Source of the DNA: Anaeramoeba ignava BMAN
Lineage: Eukaryota > Protista > Anaeramoebae
NCBI GenBank assembly: GCA_028826165.1
Contig: JAPDFW010000091.1
Span: 1-64,000 of the forward strand
Direction of reading: 5' to 3'
Length of the DNA: 64,000 bases
The stretch's first letter is position 1, and every line of letters starts with the position of its first letter. The notes under the pieces are model-generated. The model saw only the letters and a list, made by a program, of their open reading frames with translations, did no database searches and was not told the origin of the DNA. A program made the position numbers and the translations under genes. Positions 5,007 to 61,157 of this stretch are shown one piece after another.

Positions 5007-7823
5007 TTAAATAATAGACTCATTCAAAGAAAGTTTGTAATTTTTGCACAAATCAATATAATGAGGAACTTGATGTCTTTCTAAATAATGTCTAGCAATC
5101 CTTTCATTTTCAAATGAATGAAAAGCAAATCGCTTAAAACTTGGTTTCTTTGCAGAACCTTCCCAAAGCAAGACACAGAAATTTTTCTTTTCAGTTGGTC
5201 TTGCTCCATCTATTTCTGTTTCTGAATCAGTATCAGAATCAGAATCAGAATCAAAATCACTATTTTCATCATCTTTATCAGAATCACTTTGTGAATCATC
5301 TTCTGGATTCTTTTTTTTTGGAACATCCAATTTCCATTTAATTCTTTTAAGTAATAAATTTTTGTAAAATTTAATATTTTTTGGTCCTCCTTCAACAACA
5401 ATCAAGTTCATATCTCTCACAAAAATACAACAACCTGAAAGATTACGTTGTTGTGCATTCACATCAATTTTATATTTTGTTTTTGGATGACGAATATGTT
5501 TGGCATGAAAAACAGCAATGTGAATTTTGGCACTTGTATCTTCACTTAATTTCCTTTTTTTCTTTTCAAGACGCTCTTCTTTTGTGAGTTTTTTGTTGTG
5601 TAAAGCATGTTTACGTTGTCTTTCTTCAATTTCTTTTCTGACATATAAATCTACTTTTGTTGGGTCTTGTATTGCTTCCTGGCCAAGAACACGCATAAAA
5701 TTTGAGAGTTTAACTAAAATTAAAATTAAAATTAAAATTAAAATTAAAATAAAAATTAAAATTAAAATCAAAATCAAAATCAAAATTAAAATTAAAATTA
5801 ATATTAAAATTAAAATATTTTTAAATACCTTTTGGTTTTGGAGGAGGAAGAAGTCCAAGTCGTATTTTATCTTGTGTTTCTTTCTCTCTTTCTAATCTTC
5901 TCATTGTTCGTAATTTCCTCATTTCTTGTTTTGTTAATAAGGGTTTTAACTCTTTAATTGGTCGAATATCAATAGGAGAAGTAACTGAAATTGGATGTTG
6001 AACAAGATTTGTAATATGTGATTTTTGAAGTTCTGAATGAAGAGAATATTGGTATTCGGAAATAATATTAGAAAGATTTTCTGTTGATTCAGTTTGCATT
6101 TCATTTTCATTTTCATTTTCTTGATTATTGTTATTATTGTTATTATTGTTTAAATCTTTTAAAGACATCATTTTAAAAAATGATTGTAATTGTTTATAAT
6201 TAAAATTCTCAAGATCAATATTTGGAATTTTGTCGTATGTTTGAGACTTGAGTAAAGGTTCATCCCACCATTCAATTTCTGGGATTGGATTTGGTTTTAT
6301 TTTTAAAGAATTTTCAAATTCAATTTCTTGTTCTTCACCATCAATTTCAAGTTCTGTTTTTAAACGTAAAAGTTCATGTTGTCTTTCGTTTTCTCTAAAT
6401 TGCTCAGCTTCAGAAATGTATTTTCCAGGTTCGGCAAAGTTAAAATTTTTTTGTTTTTTGGAATCAATTCCTTTTGTTAGTTTTTTGTTTTTCAGATTTA
6501 ATCTTGTATCAAAAAAAGGGTTTATTTTTGGATTTGTTGCCATTTTTGGTTTTAGTTTCACATTTCGATCACTTTTCATTTTCATATTTGCTTTAATTGA
6601 AGCTAAACTAGATTTTGTTTGAGAAACTATGAGATTTCCGTTTTCATCAATTTCTCTTCCGTCTTGATCAAATAATAATGGACGAGGACCTTCGATATCA
6701 ATGCGTCTTGGTTGCTTGATTATTGCTGATGGGTTTGTCATTCCTGTAATATTACTTTGTGATACAATTGATGTTATATTTTGAGTATCAAGTTTTTTAC
6801 GTACGATTGTTGTGCTTGTTGGAATAAAAGGAACTACAGTATTTTTTTGGAGGAAGAGTTGATTCTAATTAAATAAAAATATAAATAAAAATATAAATAT
6901 AAATATAAATAAAAATATAAATATAAATATAAATATAAATATAAATATAAATATAAATATAAATATAAATATAAATATAAATATAAATATAAATATAAAT
7001 ATAAATATAAATATAAATATAAATATAAATATAAATATAAATATAAATATAAATATAAATATAAATATAAATATAAATATAAATATAAATATAAATATAA
7101 ATATAAATATAAATATAAATATAAATATAATTATAAATTTAAATATAAATATAAATATAAATATAAATATAAATATAATTATAAATATAATTATAAATAT
7201 AAATATAAATATAAATATAAATATAAATATAAATATAATTATAAATATAAATATAAATATAAATACAAATATAAATATTATTATAAATATAAATATAAAT
7301 ATAAATATAAATATAAATATAAATATAAATATAAATATAAATATAAATATAAATATAAATATAAATATAAATATAAATAGTTCACCTTTTTCATTTGATT
7401 TAGTTGCTCAATAACTTGATTTCGGATTTGAATTGATAAAATTAGTTTTTGTTGGGCTAATTTAATTTGATTAGATCTAACATTTGGTACATTATCTTGC
7501 CCAAAAATTTCTTCTTTTTCTTTTGAATAATGTCGATTTTTTTCATTTTGTGAACGATGACTTGATTTTCTTTCTTTTTCATGTGATCTTCTATGTTTAT
7601 CTCTATGTTGGTGATGATGTTCTTTTTTTCTTTCTCGACTTTTATGTCTTTCATGTTTATCTTCATGTTTGTCATGTTTGTCATGTTTTCTTTCTCGACT
7701 TTTATGTCTGTCGTCATGTTTTTCATGTCTGTCATGTTTGTCATGTTTTTCTTCATGTTTTTCATGTCTGTCATGTTTTTTTTCTTTTTCATGATGAGAA
7801 GAACTTCTTTTATGTGAACCCAT
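5007..7823 (-). CDS. PRPF3: U4/U6 snRNP protein Prp3; introns 6865-7385 and 5714-5828
   Basis: Motifs [29 protein letters not shown]|[32 protein letters not shown] and CVLLWEG. Both GT-AG introns preserve frame. Confidence 0.95.
6870..7379. repeat. (ATATAA)n microsatellite forming Prp3 intron 1
   Basis: Visible near-perfect hexamer array. Confidence 0.95.
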
Positions 7824-7926
7824 AATTGAAAAAAAAAGCAAAAAAAAAATGAAAAAAATTAATTTTATTTTTCATTTTTTCATTTTTTCATTTTTTAAAT
7901 TTTCATTTTTTTTTTATTAAATAAAT

Positions 7927-8869
7927 ATGCAAGCAGCTGGAAAATTAGCTGTAAAAGTTACAAGTGCAAATGGTTTACCAAGTATAATTCAATCACAAGA
8001 AAAAATTCATTTATAAAATTAAAATTCATTTATAAAATTAAAATTCATTTATAAAATTAAAATTTATTTATAAAATTAAAATTCATTTATAAAATTAAAA
8101 TTAAAAAGGATCTGGAGCATTTTATTGTGTACTTTCACTTGAAAATCAAGAAAAAAAAACAAACAAAACAAGAGGATCAACATCAAATCCAATTTGGAAT
8201 GAACAAATACATTTTACAGTAACGAATTCAAACTCAAAACTTTCAGTATTAGTAAAATTAGGAAATGACACAGTAGGAGAAACAACAATAGATATAAGTG
8301 AATTACCGAGTGGAAATTCAGTTGATAAAGAATATCCACTCAAAACAAAAGGAAAATCAAAAAGTACAATTTTCTTACATTTACTTTATTCTTCTCATCA
8401 AGTCAAGGATGTTCAATCTGCAAATATCGCAAGAAAAACTTTCGAAGCTGTATCTACAACTAGTGATGATGCCTCCCTTAAAGGCTATCGTCTCCAAGCT
8501 TTGCGCCAATTGAGAAATGCTCGTCCTTCTAGAAAAGAAAATCGTGAAAGAGCTATTTTGGAAGAATTGACTTTTTTATCAGAAGAAGAAAAAATTTATT
8601 CTCAAAAACAACAATTAGAATCTGTTCAAGCTATTACTCAACTTAAGGAAACTTTGATTAGTCATTTGGAGGAAATTATTGGTGAAAAAGTCAAAATTCA
8701 AGACGATTCTAAAGATGAAAATGATAATGATAATGAAAATGAAAATGAAAATGAAAATGATAATGAAAATGAAAATGAAAATGATAATGAAAATAATATT
8801 GAAATGGAAAATGATATTGAAATGGAAAATGAAAATGTTAATGAAAATTTAAATAATAATAATAATTAA
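7927..8869 (+). CDS. C2-domain protein with coiled-coil and acidic N/E/D tail; intron 7982-8108
   Basis: Spliced frame MQAAGKLAVKVTSANGLP|RSGAFYCVLSLENQEKKTNKTRGSTSNPIWNEQIHF (C2 signature NPxWNE) runs into ORF 8501-8869. Confidence 0.85.
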
Positions 8870-9094
8870 TTAATTAATCAAAATTAACATCAAAAAAAAA
8901 GAAAAAATTTAATTTAAATCAATTTTTCTTTTTCTTTTTCTTTTTCTAAAAAAAAAAATCAATTTAAATTTTTTTTAAATGAAAAAGAGAAATTGTTATT
9001 TGGATTTTTTAGTTTGTTTTTTGTTATTTTTTATGTTGAATTTTTATAATCATTTATTTTATAAAAAAAGAAAATTATTTTGATTTTTTTTTTT

Positions 9095-9190
9095 GTGGGT
9101 TCTTTGTGTCGTCAAAGAACCCCTCCATTGTTTTATTAATGGAGAAAAAAAACGGACTTTTTTTCCTGGACAATTCCAGTGAGGTCCACC
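9095..9190 (-). promoter_or_regulatory. Structured RNA element in the ODC 3' region (three hairpins, AAUAAA in a loop)
   Basis: Perfect stems 9097-9106/9113-9122 (10 bp), 9123-9129/9138-9144 (7 bp) and 9166-9170/9175-9179, the last nested in 9154-9157/9184-9187. GC-rich island within A/T tracts. Confidence 0.6.
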
Positions 9191-10542
9191 AAATCCATAA
9201 AGAAGAAAAAAGGAAATATAAAGAAAAAGTATAAGAAGAAAAAATAGAAAAAAGCAAAAATTGAATTGAATTGAATTATAAAAAGTAAAAACTTGAGAAA
9301 AAGAAGAGAAAAAAAGAGATCTTGTTTCAGAAATGTCAAATATAATGAGAGGATTGCAAGTAAGTAACATCTGTGATTTGGAAGCCGTTGAAATTGGTAG
9401 CAGCAGCTGTTGTATAAGCACCCATATCATAGAAAATTATCCAATCACCAATATCAAGCTCTGGGAGAAGTAGACTTTTCTTGATGCAATCAATGGAATC
9501 ACAAGTGGGTCCAAACAAAGAAGATTCATATAACTCTTCATCCTCGTTCACTGAACGGAACACCGACACTGCTGGTTCTGCATGATCAAAAATAACACAA
9601 TTAAGAGTGCCGTAGAGTCCGTCGCTCAGGAAATACTGGAAAGTATCTGTTTCGCCGTGGTTCTTTTTGCGCTTTGCATATACATCTAAAACAATTGTTT
9701 GGCAACTGGTCGCAAAATATCTTCCTGGCTCAGCAACCACCTCGACATCCGAATCAAACAACTCGCTGATATCTTGATTTACTGTCTCGGCAATTTCCAT
9801 GAACGTGACACCATCTTGTTTGTGGAAAGTTCCTGTTCCAGGAAATCCGCCACCAATGTCGAGGAAATTCATATGAATGCCCATGTCCTTGGCAAGTCGA
9901 AATATATCGCTAACAGACGTAAGTGTTTCTGTGTATGTTGCAACGTCTTTGCATCCGCTTCCTACATGAAAGGATACTCCAATAATGTTAACCCCAATTT
10001 CTACTGCTCGTGTCAAAATACCGTGAATTTCTTTCAAATCAGCACCGAATTTAGATGACAATCTGCATACTGAGTTCTCATCGTTTGTTTTGATTCTAAG
10101 CACAAGTTCAGCTTCAGGATAATGTTTGGAAATCTTCACCATTTCTTCAACAGAATCAAATGTCATCTTGCTAACTTTGTGTGCTTTTGCGTATTTCAAG
10201 TGAGGAATCATTTTGCATGGATTAGCGAATATTATACGATCACTTGACACACCTAATCCAAGTACAACTGCGATTTCTTGTTTGCTTGCACAGTCAAAAT
10301 TCACATCGAGTTTTGCTAGAACTTTTAAAATTTCAATGTTAGGATTGCATTTTACTGCATAGAAGGGTTTAATTGTTGGCATCCATCTCATCCAGTCTTC
10401 GTATCTTCGTACAACTTCATCGAGATCAATGATAACAAATGGTTGATCTTGTTCTGCTTCAATTTTGGTTTTAATAGCATGATTAACTGCCGAGTGTGTA
10501 TCATAATTGTTGAATTGTTTGGTTCGAATGATTTTTTGCTCG

Positions 10543-11152
<610 letters not shown>

Positions 11153-11897
11153 TTGATTTCTTTTATAAAAAATGCCAAATTATTTTCCAATAAAATTAAT
11201 AAATTCGTTAAAAATTAACCCTTTTCAATAACAATCATTAATTAAATATTATTTTATCAATAAATATTCATAAAATTTGTTTTATTTTATCTTTTTATAT
11301 CTTTTTATAAGTTTATTTTTATTATTTTTTTATTATTTTATTATTTACTTGAGAGTGAAGAGAATAAAGAGTGTAATTTTTGAAACAAGGAAAAAAAAAG
11401 TGATTTTTAATTTTTTTAATTGATCATTTCTTTTAAACAAAAAATTCACAAACAACAAATTATTTTTTAATTTATTTTATTAATTTTAAAACAAAAAAAA
11501 AATTTTTTTTTTTTAATTGGATTTAATTTAATTTGTCGTAAGGTCTGGTTTTTTTTTTTATTTTTTTATTTTTATTTTCACTAATTAAATAAATCAAATA
11601 AATTATTAAAAGCCAAAATTTTTTCACTTATTCTAATCTTTTTCTCTTTCATTTAATGTCTAATGTTTTTATAAACTTGTCTTTTTTTTCTTTCTATTTT
11701 GATCTTAAAATTTTTCTTTTTTTTTTTTTTTTTTTTTTCCTTTTAATTTTTCTTAGATCGATCCATATTTGATTAAACAATTTTAATAATATAAAAATAT
11801 TTAAAAATACAAATTAAACTTTAAATTCAAATTTTCGTCATTTGATCTTTCTTTTTTTTTCATTTTATTTTCTTTTTTCCATTTTCTTTTATTTCTT

Positions 11898-11907
11898 AAC
11901 ACGTGTT
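11898..11907. promoter_or_regulatory. Palindromic E-box AACACGTGTT upstream of ODC
   Basis: CACGTG in a spacer that is almost entirely A/T. Confidence 0.4.
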
Positions 11908-11989
11908 TAACATTATTTTCAATCTCCCCTTTTAAAAACAAATTTAAAAAAAAATTTTTTTTTTCTTTTTCAAGATCTCTATTGAAATT

Positions 11990-14886
11990 TTCTTTAATAA
12001 AATATTAATAATTAATATTAAATTAAATAATAATTTATTTATAATTATTTTTATTTATTAATTTTAAATCAAAATATTAATTAAATATTAATTAAATTTA
12101 TAATTAAAATTTAAATAAAAAATTAAATCAAATTTTCTTTAAATAAAATATTAATAATTTAATATTAAATTAAATAATAATTTATTTATAATTATTTTAT
12201 ATTTATTAATTTTAAATCAAAATATTAATTTAAATATTAATTTTTATAATTAAAATTTAAATTAAAAATTAAATCAAATTTTAAATCAATAAAATATTAA
12301 TAATTAATATTAAATTAAATAATAATTTATTTATAATTATTTATATTTATTAATTTTAAATCAAAATATTAATTTAAATATTAATTAATTATAATTAAAA
12401 TTTAAATTAAAAATTAAATCAAATTTTAAATCAAATAAAATATTAATAATTAATATTAAATTAAATAATAATTTATTTATAATTATTTATATTTATTAAT
12501 TTTAAATCAAAATATTAATTAAATCTAAATTAAATTATAATTAAAATTTAAATCAAAAATTAAATCAAATTTTAAATCAATAAAATATTAATAATTAATA
12601 TTAAATTAAATAATAATTTATTTATATTTATTTATATTTATTAATTTTAAATCAAAATATTAATTAAATATTAATTAAATATAATTAAATATAATTAAAT
12701 TTTAAATCAAAAATTAAATCAAATTTTTAAATAAATAAAATATTAATAATTAATATTAAATTAAATAATAATTTATTTATAATTATTTATATTTATTAAT
12801 TTTAAATCAAAATATTAATTAAATATTCAATTAAATATAATTAAAATTTAAATAAAAATTAAATCAAAATTTTAAATAAAAAAAAAATATTAATAATTAA
12901 TATTAAATTAAATAATAATTTATTTATAATTATTTATATTTATTAATTTTAAATCAAAAATATTAATTAAATATTAATTAATTATAATTAAAAATTTAAA
13001 TAAAAATTAAATCAAATTTTAAATCAATAAAATATTAATAATTAATATTAAATTAAATAATAATTTATTTATAATTATTTATATTTATTAATTTTAAATC
13101 AAAATATTAATTAAATATTAATTAAATATAATTAAAATTTAAATTAAAAATTAAATCAAATTTTAAATCAATAAAATATTAATAATTAATATTAAATTAA
13201 ATAATAATTTATTTATAATTATTTATAATTATTAATTTTAAATCAAAATATTAATTTAATATTAATTAAATATAATTAAAATTTAAATTAAAAATTAAAT
13301 CAAATTTTAAATCAATAAAATATTAATAATTAATATTAAATTAAATAATAATTTATTTATAATTATTTATATTTATTAATTTTAAATCAAAATATTAATT
13401 AAATCATAAATTAAATATAATTAAAATTTAAATCAAAAATTAAATCAAATTTTAAATCAATAAAATATTAATAATTAATATTAAATTAAATAATAATTTA
13501 TTTATAATTATTTATAATTTTTAATTTTAAATCAAAATTTTAAATCAAAATATTAATTAAATATTAAAATTAAATAAAATTAAAAAATTTAAATCAAAAA
13601 TTAAATCAAATTTTAAATCAATAAAATATTAATATTTAATATTAAATTAAATAATAATTTATTTATAATTATTTATATTTATTAATTTTAAATCAAAATA
13701 TTAATAATTAAATCTAAATTAAATTATAATTAAAAATTTAAATCAAAAAATTAAATCAAATTTTAAATAAATAAAATATTAATATTTAATATTAAATTAA
13801 ATAATAATTTATTTATAATTATTTTTAATTATTAATTTTAAATCAAAATATTAATTAAATATTAAATTAAATATAATTAAAATTTAAATCAAAAATTAAA
13901 TCAAATTTTTAAATAAATAAAATATTAATATTTAATATTAAAATTAAATAATAATTTATTTATAATTATTTTTATTTATTAATTTTAAATCAAAAAATAT
14001 TAATTAAATCTAAATTATAATTAAAATTTAAATAAAAAATTAAATCAAATTTTAAATCAATAAAATATTAATATTTAATATTAAAATTAAATAATAATTT
14101 ATTTATATTTATTTTTATTTATTAATTTTAAATCAAAATATTAATTAAATCTAAATTAAATATAATTAAAATTTAAATCAAAAATTAAATCAAATTTTAA
14201 ATAAATAAAATATTAATATTTAATATTAAATTAAATAATAATTTATTTATAATTATTTTTATTTATTAATTTTAAATCAAAATATTAATTAAATCTTAAT
14301 TAAATATAATTAAAATTTAAATCAAAAAATTAAATCAAATTTTTAAATCAATAAAAATATTAATAATTAATATTAAATTAAATAATAATTTATTTATAAT
14401 TATTTATATTTATTAATTTTAAATCAAAATATTAATTAAATCTAAATTAATTATAATTAAAATTTAAATCAAAAAATTAAATCAAATTTTAAATCAATAA
14501 AATATTAATATTTAATATTAAATTAAATAATAATTTATTTATAATTATTTATAATTTATTAATTTTAAATCAAAATATTAATTAAATATTAATTAAATAT
14601 AATTAAAATTTAAATTAAAAATTTAAATCAAATTTTAAATCAATAAAATATTAATAATTTAATATTAAATTAAAAATAATAATTTATTAATATTTATTTA
14701 TATTTATTAATTTTAAATCAAAATATTAATTAAATATTAATTAATTATAATTAAAATTTAAATAAAAAATTAAATCAAATTTTAAATAAATAAAATATTA
14801 ATAATTAATATTAAATTAAATAATAATTTATTTATAATTATTTATATTTATTAATTTTAAATCAAAATATTAATTAAATATTAATT
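11990..14886. repeat. Tandem satellite, ~20 copies of a ~145-bp unit
   Basis: The marker TAATTTATT recurs at 12031, 12178, 12323, 12469, 12614, 12769, 12916, 13061 ... 14824, with spacing mostly 143-150 bp. Confidence 0.95.
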
Positions 14887-59200: not shown

Positions 59201-61157
59201 ATATTTAAATTGTTAGATATTAATTTAAGAATTGAAAATATTTAAATTTTGTTTATTTCTGAATAAGTAAGTTCTTGAGGTTTTCTTGAGTGTAATTCTA
59301 ATTTTACAATCTTCAGTTCTCGAATAAAAGAATTAAATAAAAAACGGAATAATTCATGAGCATCTTGTTGTTGATTTAAATCAAATAATGAATTTATTAT
59401 TTGAAGATTATTCATCAAATTTTTTAAATTGATTTTCTCTTGTTGGAGTTTCAATTTCTTCTAAAGGAAACAATTCATAATTTCCTTCATTGGATAAATG
59501 CCGAGCTTGAACAGATCCAGTTTGTGTGTAATAAAATTGAAAGAATTTTCGGCATCCTTTAAAAGTTTTGACTTCTATCTAATCTTTTTGTATACAATTT
59601 CCAAAATTTGTGGGAATACAATTTGATGGTTTCACAATTAAATTGGTATAATCTTGCTTGTTATTGGGCCTATTTCCTTTCACTTTTTCTCTTGTTTCCA
59701 GTTGTTTCAATCTACCGAACATTTCATCACATTCAGAAGCTCCATGATTTGGCAATAAAAAATTATGTTCAATAAGAATATCAAGTTCTTCAGAGAATTC
59801 AGAAAAAAAGAAAAACAATTTTTTGTTTTTAAAATGTGGTCCTCCATCACTCCATAAAATCAATTTTTTGAAAGAAGAAAAATAATCATTTTCTCCAAAA
59901 TAAAGAAAAACAATTTATTATAAGAGAAAAATGAGATGATTTCAAAAAATAAAAAATTTTTTGAAATCATCTCATTTTTACTCAAGTTGCTCATTTCTCA
60001 ATTTTCCCAATTTTATTGCGAATTAAAAAAAAATTGGTTATTCTTTTCTTTTTTTAATTTTGATTTGTTATTTGTTGTGATTTGATTTTTTTTTTCATTT
60101 TGTGGATTACCATGAAACTCAATTCTTGTTTATTTTTATGTCCTGTGATTTTCATGATTTGACGAACAAATATTTGATCGTTCGATAAAATGGAAAACAC
60201 TTGTCACTCTTAGAGAATGTAAGGAAACTCGACTTTCGATTTCTGCCTTTTTCACTATTAATTTGAAAAAAAAATCAATTAATTTATTGGAATTCATCGT
60301 TTTTTTGATATACCTCTTTGAACGACTTACTGAATAATTAATCAGGAGAAAAAAATTCTTCTTTTTTTTTTGTGACATCTATTCTATACTCTTTTCTGTT
60401 TCGTCTATGGTAATGAATGCATAATGTTTGTTGAGTATTTTGTAGCCTTGATTTCGAAAAATTGTTTTTGATATAAATTAAATTTGATTTGAATTTAAAA
60501 ATTAATTAAAAAAAAATCAAAGCCTGAAAATATTATGTTAGTCAATTCAAAAGATGACACATCAATTAAAATATGTGATTTTGGTCTTTCACGTTTTACT
60601 TCAGAAAAAGAAAAAATGTCAACTTTTGTTGGAACATTACAATATTTAGCTCCTGAAATTATAGTTCAACTTTATCCAGAATCAATTGCAAAAGGATATA
60701 CAAAAGCTTGTGATCTTTGGTCTTGTGGAATTATTCTTTATGTTTTGTAATTAAACAAAAAATTAAAAATTTAAATTTAAATTTAAAAAATTTATATTTA
60801 ATATTTAATAGATTATCAGGTTATATTCCTTTTACTTCATTAAAACAAACAATGATTATGAAACAAATTCTTGAAGGAGATATTGATTTTCCTCCTGATA
60901 TTTTCTCAAATGTTTCAATTGCTGGTAAATTATATTTATAACAAAAATAAATTGAAAAAAAATAAATTGAAATTTGAAAATGAAAAATTAATTTTTTTTT
61001 AGCTCGAAATTTAATAAGAAGAATGTTAACTGTTGATCCTCTTCATAGAATTACAGCAGAAGAAGCTCTTCAACATCCTTGGATTTTAGGTCAATCTGAA
61101 AAAATTAAAGATGAAATGCAAGATGTTTGGACTAAAAAACCAAAATTGTTTAAATAA
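56269..61157 (+). CDS. FHA-domain + CAMK-group kinase (Chk2/Dun1-like architecture), 11 exons, including a 2.64-kb intron 57883-60522
   Basis: AWGKL, FHA ISKFHC..DYSIHGTFVNGK, LGT|GKFAEV, YAMKIV, GGELLD, HRDLK|PENI, DFGLS, GTLQYLAPE, DLWSCGII and RITAEEALQHPWI. Confidence 0.9.
58031..59454 (-). pseudogene. Three tandem ~200-bp remnants of a ubiquitin-specific protease (C19)-like segment interleaved with a ~38-bp repeat
   Basis: Each copy (about 58031-58240, 58896-59103, 59238-59447) reads FDLNQQQDAHELFxFLF, resembling the USP QQDAHEF box. Confidence 0.55.
59460..59920 (-). mobile_element. Degenerate Sola-like DDD transposase fragment
   Basis: ILWSDGGPHFKNK..HNFLLPNHGASECDEMFG, then an in-frame TAG, then VKTFKGCRKFFQF..VQARHLS. 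Confidence 0.65.
59927..59979. repeat. Perfect 24-bp inverted repeat with 5-nt loop
   Basis: AAAAATGAGATGATTTCAAAAAAT-aaaaa-ATTTTTTGAAATCATCTCATTTTT. Confidence 0.9.
60105..60470 (-). mobile_element. Tyrosine recombinase (Crypton-like) C-terminal remnant
   Basis: FFLLINY..KLIVKKAEIESRVSLHSLRVTS, a frameshift, then VRQIMKITGHKNKQEL: the HxLR and TGH boxes of tyrosine recombinases. Confidence 0.7.

Follow-up and report, generated by a model that had tools for sequence, protein, structure and literature searches.

A 3'-terminal row of stable hairpins in an ornithine decarboxylase mRNA of Anaeramoeba ignava: a candidate gene-specific 3'-end element

Ornithine decarboxylase (ODC) is the rate-limiting and heavily feedback-controlled enzyme of polyamine synthesis, and its control in animals and fungi runs via antizyme and the untranslated regions (UTRs) of its mRNA. 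Anaeramoeba ignava, a little-studied anaerobic amoeba, belongs to the Anaeramoebae, a deep-branching anaerobic lineage. The stretch of Anaeramoeba ignava BMAN DNA analysed here (contig JAPDFW010000091.1, positions 1 to 64,000, 64,000 nucleotides (nt) in total; hereafter the window) encodes an ODC on its minus strand, and a compact island of hairpins lies behind this gene at 9195-9095, read in the ODC sense. The window has a GC content of about 20% and the spacer around the island of about 15%, compared to 41% in the island itself. An island with unbroken stems at 41% GC in a spacer this poor in GC is either young or maintained. We tentatively interpret the island as a cis-acting module for the 3' end of this ODC mRNA alone, which would position cleavage or block 3'-to-5' decay. 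In favour of this interpretation, the structure is genuine and stands out in the genome, belongs to the mRNA and lies where the transcript ends.

The island starts about 140 nt past the ODC stop codon (9338-9336) and comprises three hairpins, P1, P2 and P3 (Table 1), the second of which presents an AAUAAA in its loop and is directly abutted by the third. This arrangement had been described in an annotation made from the sequence alone (hereafter the first-pass annotation), and its sequence, its coordinates and its distance from the stop codon were all confirmed. Every stem is a perfect Watson-Crick helix, with about 30 pairs and zero G-U pairs in total, and G-U pairs therefore cannot discriminate between the two strands. 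The minus strand folds with a minimum free energy (MFE) of -33.5 kcal/mol (z -3.3; 1 of 200 shuffles equally good) and the plus strand with -38.0 kcal/mol (z -5.1; 0 of 200 shuffles equally good). Pair probabilities were obtained by folding the whole 242-nt 3' UTR, both alone and extended by a tail of 40 A, and amounted to 0.91-1.0 for P2, 0.99-1.0 for P3, 0.73-0.88 for the inner stem of P1 and 0.09-0.30 for its outer stem; the pairing of inner P1, P2 and P3 persists with or without the tail (0.73-1.0).

The low values of the outer P1 stem go together with an alternative hairpin, in which the run of seven A in the bulge strand of P1 (A7) pairs with a run of eight U (U8) and which excludes the outer stem. 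In isolation, the state containing this A7:U8 hairpin is predicted at -31.9 kcal/mol, 1.6 kcal/mol apart from the -33.5 kcal/mol of the state with outer P1, and in the fold of the whole 3' UTR the A7:U8 hairpin is the MFE state. The competing hairpin had also been noted in the first-pass annotation as incompatible with the base of P1, which holds for the outer stem, and as invading P2, which does not hold, as the predicted form abuts P2 instead. The alternative state thus consists of four hairpins with zero linker bases between them, and the A7 strand of P1 is the sole internal loop of the predicted fold. According to these folding models, P2, P3 and inner P1 are robust and the competition between outer P1 and A7:U8 is almost even. 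In a scan for terminators of the bacterial type, P2 was the only hairpin flagged, and its T-rich tail is weak; for a eukaryote such a result carries no meaning.

The frequency of such structures was surveyed in a genome sample that combines the window with twenty pieces, 10 kb each, of contig C1 (264 kb in total). Perfect hairpins with a stem of 7 bp or longer and three or more G-C pairs number 19 in this sample, and most of them are located inside open reading frames (ORFs). The ODC island is the sole site in the 264 kb with two such hairpins no more than 130 nt apart, and P3 is the best GC-containing hairpin of the window. Among 5,820 segments of 101 nt, the island ranks second by MFE and fourth after GC content is regressed out (residual z -4.9); among the other top-ranked segments, most of those with a GC content as low as that of the spacer form their fold on just one strand, like simple repeats. 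The structure is thus far beyond chance, and the first-pass statement that nothing comparable occurs in other 3' flanks of the window is borne out by the flanks of the ODC paralogues and by the hairpin survey, in which no second such cluster occurs. A separate feature of the window is a 24-bp perfect, nearly pure A/T palindrome with a 5-nt loop at 59927-59979, which is located outside long ORFs and forms the third most stable 101-nt segment of the 264 kb.

Transcript contigs place the island within the ODC mRNA. Sequencing run X4, which is labelled A. ignava, contains 78% of the words sampled from 8400-10700. One of its contigs (985 nt) is identical to 9094-10078, with 0 differences, and contains coding sequence, 3' UTR and the whole island in one piece. 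A further contig (515 nt) equals 10109-10594, followed by 29 letters matching 11349-11377, and the skipped segment begins with GT and ends with AG. Since this contig is spliced across the intron of the 5' UTR, X4 is RNA; the same join of 11349 to 10594 is repeated in contigs of two sediment metatranscriptomes (X1 and X3). As the 985-nt contig joins the island to the ODC coding sequence, the island belongs to the ODC mRNA, of whose spliced form it constitutes the last c. 100 nt, and is not a separate gene. No spliced variant within the 3' UTR was found among the transcript contigs. Within the ODC coding sequence, the X4 contigs break for exactly 30 nt (10079-10108), and a sediment metatranscriptome has two substitutions at 10077 and 10080; this break looks like a polymorphism bubble of the assembly and not like a feature of the RNA.

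The X4 contig runs through the island, so that the mRNA does not end before 9195, and stops at 9094, three bases beyond the final pair of P3, where a CA precedes an A-run. The contig end thus lies no more than 3 nt from the base of P3 in a spacer of 466 nt; a coincidence to +/-10 nt would be expected by chance in about 1 in 20 cases. A tail starting anywhere within 9094-9084 is indistinguishable from the genome-encoded A-run (11 A), and the mRNA end is likely located at 9094-9084, where the ODC mRNA is probably polyadenylated. In agreement with an end at 9094, no X4 contig continues over 8977-9093 save for a 24-nt chance match, despite a word depth near 7,400 for the ODC contigs; a hole in a set of contigs as opposed to reads proves nothing, however, and word depth does not rank genes. 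The segment 8880-8976 was skipped as a repeat.

The 242-nt 3' UTR contains a single AAUAAA, which is the one in the P2 loop. The chance of such a hexamer landing in one of the A-rich loops is a few percent. It lies 38 nt upstream of the contig end in linear distance and would be much closer with P3 folded. As a reference, we used the first 150 nt past the stop codons of 47 long ORFs of the window and the C1 pieces, a small sample without mapped 3' ends, in which the frequency of AATAAA is about 5 per kb, with no excess over its reverse complement. Because of this lack of sense-strand enrichment, it cannot be asserted that A. ignava uses AAUAAA as a signal, and its position in the P2 loop is only mildly notable. 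The same flanks contain strongly strand-biased hexamers, namely CAAAAC (20 vs 0 counted on the other strand), CAAAAT, AAAACA and TCAAAA. Two strand-biased hexamers overlap the P2 loop, which also contains AAAACA and AAACAA, and a CAAAAU is located just past the A-run, downstream of the contig end. AAUAAAACAA likewise occurs, without a hairpin, in the 3' flank of the ODC paralogue on contig C115. These biased hexamers may point to the signal that A. ignava really uses at its 3' ends.

Copies and relatives of the island were searched for in the 42.8-Mb genome of A. ignava (147 contigs) and beyond. In BLAST searches of this genome the element is single copy, matching only itself. A covariance model of the element (R1) scored 132 bits on the island, and the next match in the genome, with 21 bits and an E-value of about 1, is ordinary sequence on contig C84. 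A. ignava encodes three ODC-like genes, located on C92 (the window copy), C115 (585868-587037; 61% identical to the window copy) and C24 (478681-479826; 48%). Neither paralogue has such an island in its 3' flank: the C115 gene is followed by a 96-nt spacer to the next gene, and the C24 gene by AT-rich tandem repeats of about 60 nt each, every one of which contains AAAAAAAGTGGAATATAT. Beside these three genes, a distant decarboxylase of the same fold is encoded on C1. In a protein database search with the window ODC, no relative closer than the organism's own paralogue was found; the best named match, annotated as 'ornithine decarboxylase 1-related [Anaeramoeba ignava]' (60%), was rejected as an orthologue since it is the C115 paralogue itself (100% identical). 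Metagenome scans with the ODC protein and with the DNA pattern of P2-P3 were both blank. The P3 pattern had 4 matches in 596 billion bases of bacterial genomes, with about 1 expected by chance for 20 specified bases, and none in viral contigs. A literature search on 3' ends and poly(A) signals of Anaeramoeba returned nothing.

The island could also not be assigned to a described RNA family. The Rfam search, which had been proposed as a check on the first-pass annotation, gave no family at gathering scores over the whole window, and no riboswitch family emerged when 7000-12000 was run through cmscan at E<=10. The sole sub-threshold match is the histone stem-loop RF00032 (16.6 bits vs a gathering score of 34; E 1.1), which lies on the plus strand at 9149-9212, over the P1 region. 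A scan for tRNA and tmRNA genes found none. Judged from the sequence, the loops and stems do not fit an iron-responsive element, a Smaug/Vts1, Roquin or Rnt1 tetraloop site, an H/ACA or C/D small nucleolar RNA (snoRNA) or a microRNA (miRNA) precursor. A triple helix of the ENE/MALAT1 type, whose order of parts (a U tract, a stem-loop, a second U tract and a 3'-terminal A tract) is loosely similar, was likewise dropped, as a closing lower stem is lacking, some 20 nt separate P1 from the 5' U tract, and Rfam returned no match. The island is therefore a 3' UTR stem-loop element in kind, outside known families.

We infer that the hairpins cause or protect the mRNA end; the alternative between P1 and A7:U8 might have a regulatory use. 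In the proposed mechanism, the mRNA would fold near its end into inner P1, followed by outer P1 or A7:U8, then P2 and finally P3, a row ending 2-3 bases before the transcript stops. This row might fix the cleavage site and, probably, the polyadenylation site, with P3 potentially acting as a rigid spacer that draws the A-rich loop of P2 near the CA cleavage site. After shortening of the tail, the foot of P3 might halt 3'-to-5' exonucleases, through which the ODC mRNA would stay abundant. Positioning of cleavage and blocking of decay are not mutually exclusive.

Several observations weigh against such a 3'-end module. GC hairpins are not general at 3' ends in this genome, which implies that the 3'-end machinery of the cell does not need them, and the two ODC paralogues do without an island. 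The element is known from one locus. The RNA evidence consists of contigs, from which neither the true end of an RNA nor its tail or strand can be read; the ODC contig is without A-tail letters, and polyadenylation at 9094 is thus assumed. The AAUAAA, 38 nt from the contig end in linear distance, lies farther out than the customary 10-30 nt, and other flanks show no enrichment of it. Furthermore, about 30 Watson-Crick pairs without a G-U pair would also fit a recent palindromic insertion at the DNA level. The most serious of the alternatives, which we consider less probable than the module, accordingly holds that the island is incidental, a young, single-copy and GC-rich palindromic insertion or template-switch product in the ODC 3' UTR that has no selected function; the mRNA end would then be set by the adjacent CA and A-rich sequence, or the assembly would simply halt at the A-run. 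The perfect stems are those of a recent DNA palindrome, nothing similar occurs at the two paralogues or in the 47 sampled 3' flanks, and no conservation could be demonstrated, all of which agree with an incidental origin. However, BLAST and the covariance model recover no donor or sibling from the 42.8-Mb genome, three to four separate perfect hairpins without linkers would hardly arise through a single mutation, the transcript finishes at the very edge of the island, and the mRNA is very abundant, so that a harmful 3' structure would be selected against. Even if the island proved to be only a young insertion, it would still be an example of structure setting an mRNA end.

The remaining alternatives concern what kind of RNA the island is. 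GC islands in the spacers of very AT-rich protist genomes are often non-coding RNA (ncRNA) genes, and the island might accordingly be a separate small RNA, or one cut from the 3' UTR, on either strand, as the first-pass annotation had also considered. The plus strand folds better (z -5.1), and contigs cannot exclude an overlapping small transcript, yet we consider this very improbable: one mismatch-free contig links the island to the ODC coding sequence, neither an Rfam family nor a tRNA was matched, and no C/D boxes were seen. In addition, the hairpins are too short and lack the internal loop for an H/ACA (pseudouridylation) pocket, a miRNA precursor would need longer stems, and the U8 on the minus strand and a T7 on the plus strand would terminate RNA polymerase III inside the island. 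About as improbable as a small RNA would be a hairpin-terminated, non-polyadenylated end as in histone or organellar mRNAs, with the transcript ending in ...ACCCACA right past P3. The X4 contig has one A past the C and no loose A letters, k-mer assemblies of tailed mRNAs usually enter the tail, and the terminus does read as a stem followed by ACA. Conversely, the histone stem-loop model finds no match in P3, the encoded A11 masks any tail for 11 nt, and read trimming or assembly clean-up can strip tails; RNA libraries from xenic eukaryote cultures are moreover usually poly(A)-selected, which counts against a tail-less end, the library type of X4 not being on record.

A ligand- or polyamine-responsive switch between outer P1 and A7:U8, controlling the signal in the P2 loop, 3' processing or stability, would be in line with the status of ODC as a classic feedback-regulated gene, with the two nearly isoenergetic states (-33.5 vs -31.9 kcal/mol), whose balance shifts with context (outer P1 0.09-0.30), and with the potential of such a change to free or hide the U8 tract directly upstream of P2. 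Mutually exclusive structures, as expected of an expression platform, are indeed present, which is a weak indication because A-run/U-run pairing is commonplace in a genome of 80% A+T. A bacterial spermidine riboswitch class provides a precedent for the sensing of polyamines by RNA (PMC10853860). Against this, the island is a row of simple perfect hairpins, the predicted fold (in a model that does not cover pseudoknots) has no multi-helix junction or conserved unpaired core that could form a pocket, and no Rfam family was matched, the S-adenosylmethionine (SAM) and thiamine pyrophosphate (TPP) aptamers included. To our knowledge, TPP is the only riboswitch class established in eukaryotes. We therefore give a switch of this kind very little credence. 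Least probable of all is the specific version in which polyamines, by binding and stabilising helices of this type, shift the balance of outer P1 and A7:U8 and thereby expose or hide U8 and the signal in the P2 loop. If true, 3'-end formation or decay of the ODC mRNA would be tuned by the product of its own pathway, a novel form of metabolite feedback among eukaryotes, and no earlier eukaryotic RNA would be known to sense polyamines as the island does, here at the 3' end of the message.

Of the role envisaged in the first-pass annotation, the part in 3' processing or stability is consistent with an element that lies within the ODC mRNA and reaches its 3' end, whereas the comparison with a riboswitch is unsupported, as there is neither an Rfam match nor an aptamer-like fold. 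The label of a riboswitch should be dropped unless probing says otherwise, metabolite sensing being unsupported. Its second suggestion, an independent small ncRNA, is unlikely given the continuity of the island with the ODC coding sequence in one contig and the T-runs inside it. A cis-acting 3'-end module thus remains our tentative interpretation: a unique and very stable row of hairpins that ends where an abundant ODC mRNA ends is a concrete candidate for a gene-specific 3'-end or stability element.

The features of the locus are compiled in Table 1. The minus-strand ORF at 9336-10610 was identified as ODC by its Pfam domains (PF02784, 4.5e-77; PF00278, 4.5e-20) and contains the region of the PLP-lysine motif and the GPTCDS active-site region. 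Its ATG lies two bases into exon 2, so that these contigs call for no AUG exon of its own, and the upstream exon is matched by the transcript contig at 11349-11377. The island is located in the 466-nt spacer that separates two convergent genes, the other being a plus-strand ORF with an acidic and asparagine-rich tail, which ends at 8869. Further along the window, the minus strand encodes PRP3 (pre-mRNA processing factor 3) at 5821-7841. The upstream part of this gene is of low complexity and extremely rich in His, Lys, Asp, Glu and Arg, and ends in a long TA-rich repeat reading poly(Leu-Tyr), which is probably an intron or UTR.

Table 1. Features of the ODC transcription unit and its 3'-terminal hairpin island (positions in the window).
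Feature	Position	Strand	Description	Basis
ODC coding part	9336..10592	-	418 codons + stop codon 9338-9336; ATG at 10592	translation
5' UTR intron of ODC	10595..11348	-	GT...AG, 754 nt; long (TTTA)n microsatellite inside	RNA contigs X4, X1, X3
ODC 3' UTR	9094..9335	-	242 nt	extent as in transcript contigs
First part of ODC 3' UTR	9196..9335	-	pyrimidine-rich, mostly U; without any AAUAAA	read from sequence
P1	9154..9187	-	outer stem 9187-9184/9157-9154; inner stem 9179-9175/9170-9166; loop AUUG; A7 bulge strand 9164-9158	fold
Alternative hairpin	9145..9165	-	G + A7 (9165-9158) with U8 (9152-9145); loop GUCCG	constrained fold
P2	9123..9144	-	7-bp stem 9144-9138/9129-9123; 8-nt loop 9137-9130; AAUAAA at 9137-9132	
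P3	9097..9122	-	10-bp perfect stem 9122-9113/9106-9097; 5 G-C pairs; 6-nt loop; abuts P2	
ACA + genome-encoded A-run	9084..9096	-	11 A in all, 9094-9084; likely cleavage/end zone 9094-9084	contig end and sequence

Several known systems share individual traits with the island. In mammals, the level of the ODC mRNA is also partly set via its 3' UTR, but the elements involved are AU-rich, single-stranded protein sites, bound by HuR, which controls stability, whereas the A. ignava element consists of GC-rich hairpins and has no sequence relation to them. The bacterial spermidine riboswitch, a close variant of a SAM aptamer (PMC10853860), is the sole validated class of polyamine-sensing RNA that we found and is tied to polyamine metabolism, as the island may be; it is, however, bacterial and located in a 5' leader, and the island matches such a class neither in sequence nor in structure. 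The TPP riboswitch of the plant and algal THIC genes is likewise a 3' UTR structure of a biosynthetic gene that affects 3' processing. Its aptamer is a conserved three-way junction with a known ligand and acts by alternative splicing, in contrast to the ODC island, which is without a junction and without a match to an aptamer family.

The island also resembles the poly(A) regions of retroviruses, such as the poly(A) hairpin of HIV-1 and the Rex-responsive element of HTLV-1, where an AAUAAA is likewise located in or beside a hairpin. As in the island, a stable hairpin lies between AAUAAA and cleavage site, so that folding sets the distance and the accessibility of the signal. These regions are viral, conserved and experimentally shown, whereas the spacer hairpin of the ODC island has just 26 nt and the role of its AAUAAA is putative. 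The 3' inverted repeats of chloroplasts and bacteria and the 3' stem-loop of histone mRNAs (RF00032) provide the counterpart for the protective side of the proposed module, as they also place a stable hairpin a few bases from the mature end, define that end and block 3'-to-5' exonucleases. P3 is not matched by the model of the histone element, which describes a 6-bp stem, a 4-nt loop and an ACCCA flank on the mRNA strand at the 3' end. Compared to all of these organellar, bacterial and histone hairpins, the ODC island stands apart as a row of three to four hairpins at the end of a nuclear, spliced and probably polyadenylated mRNA.

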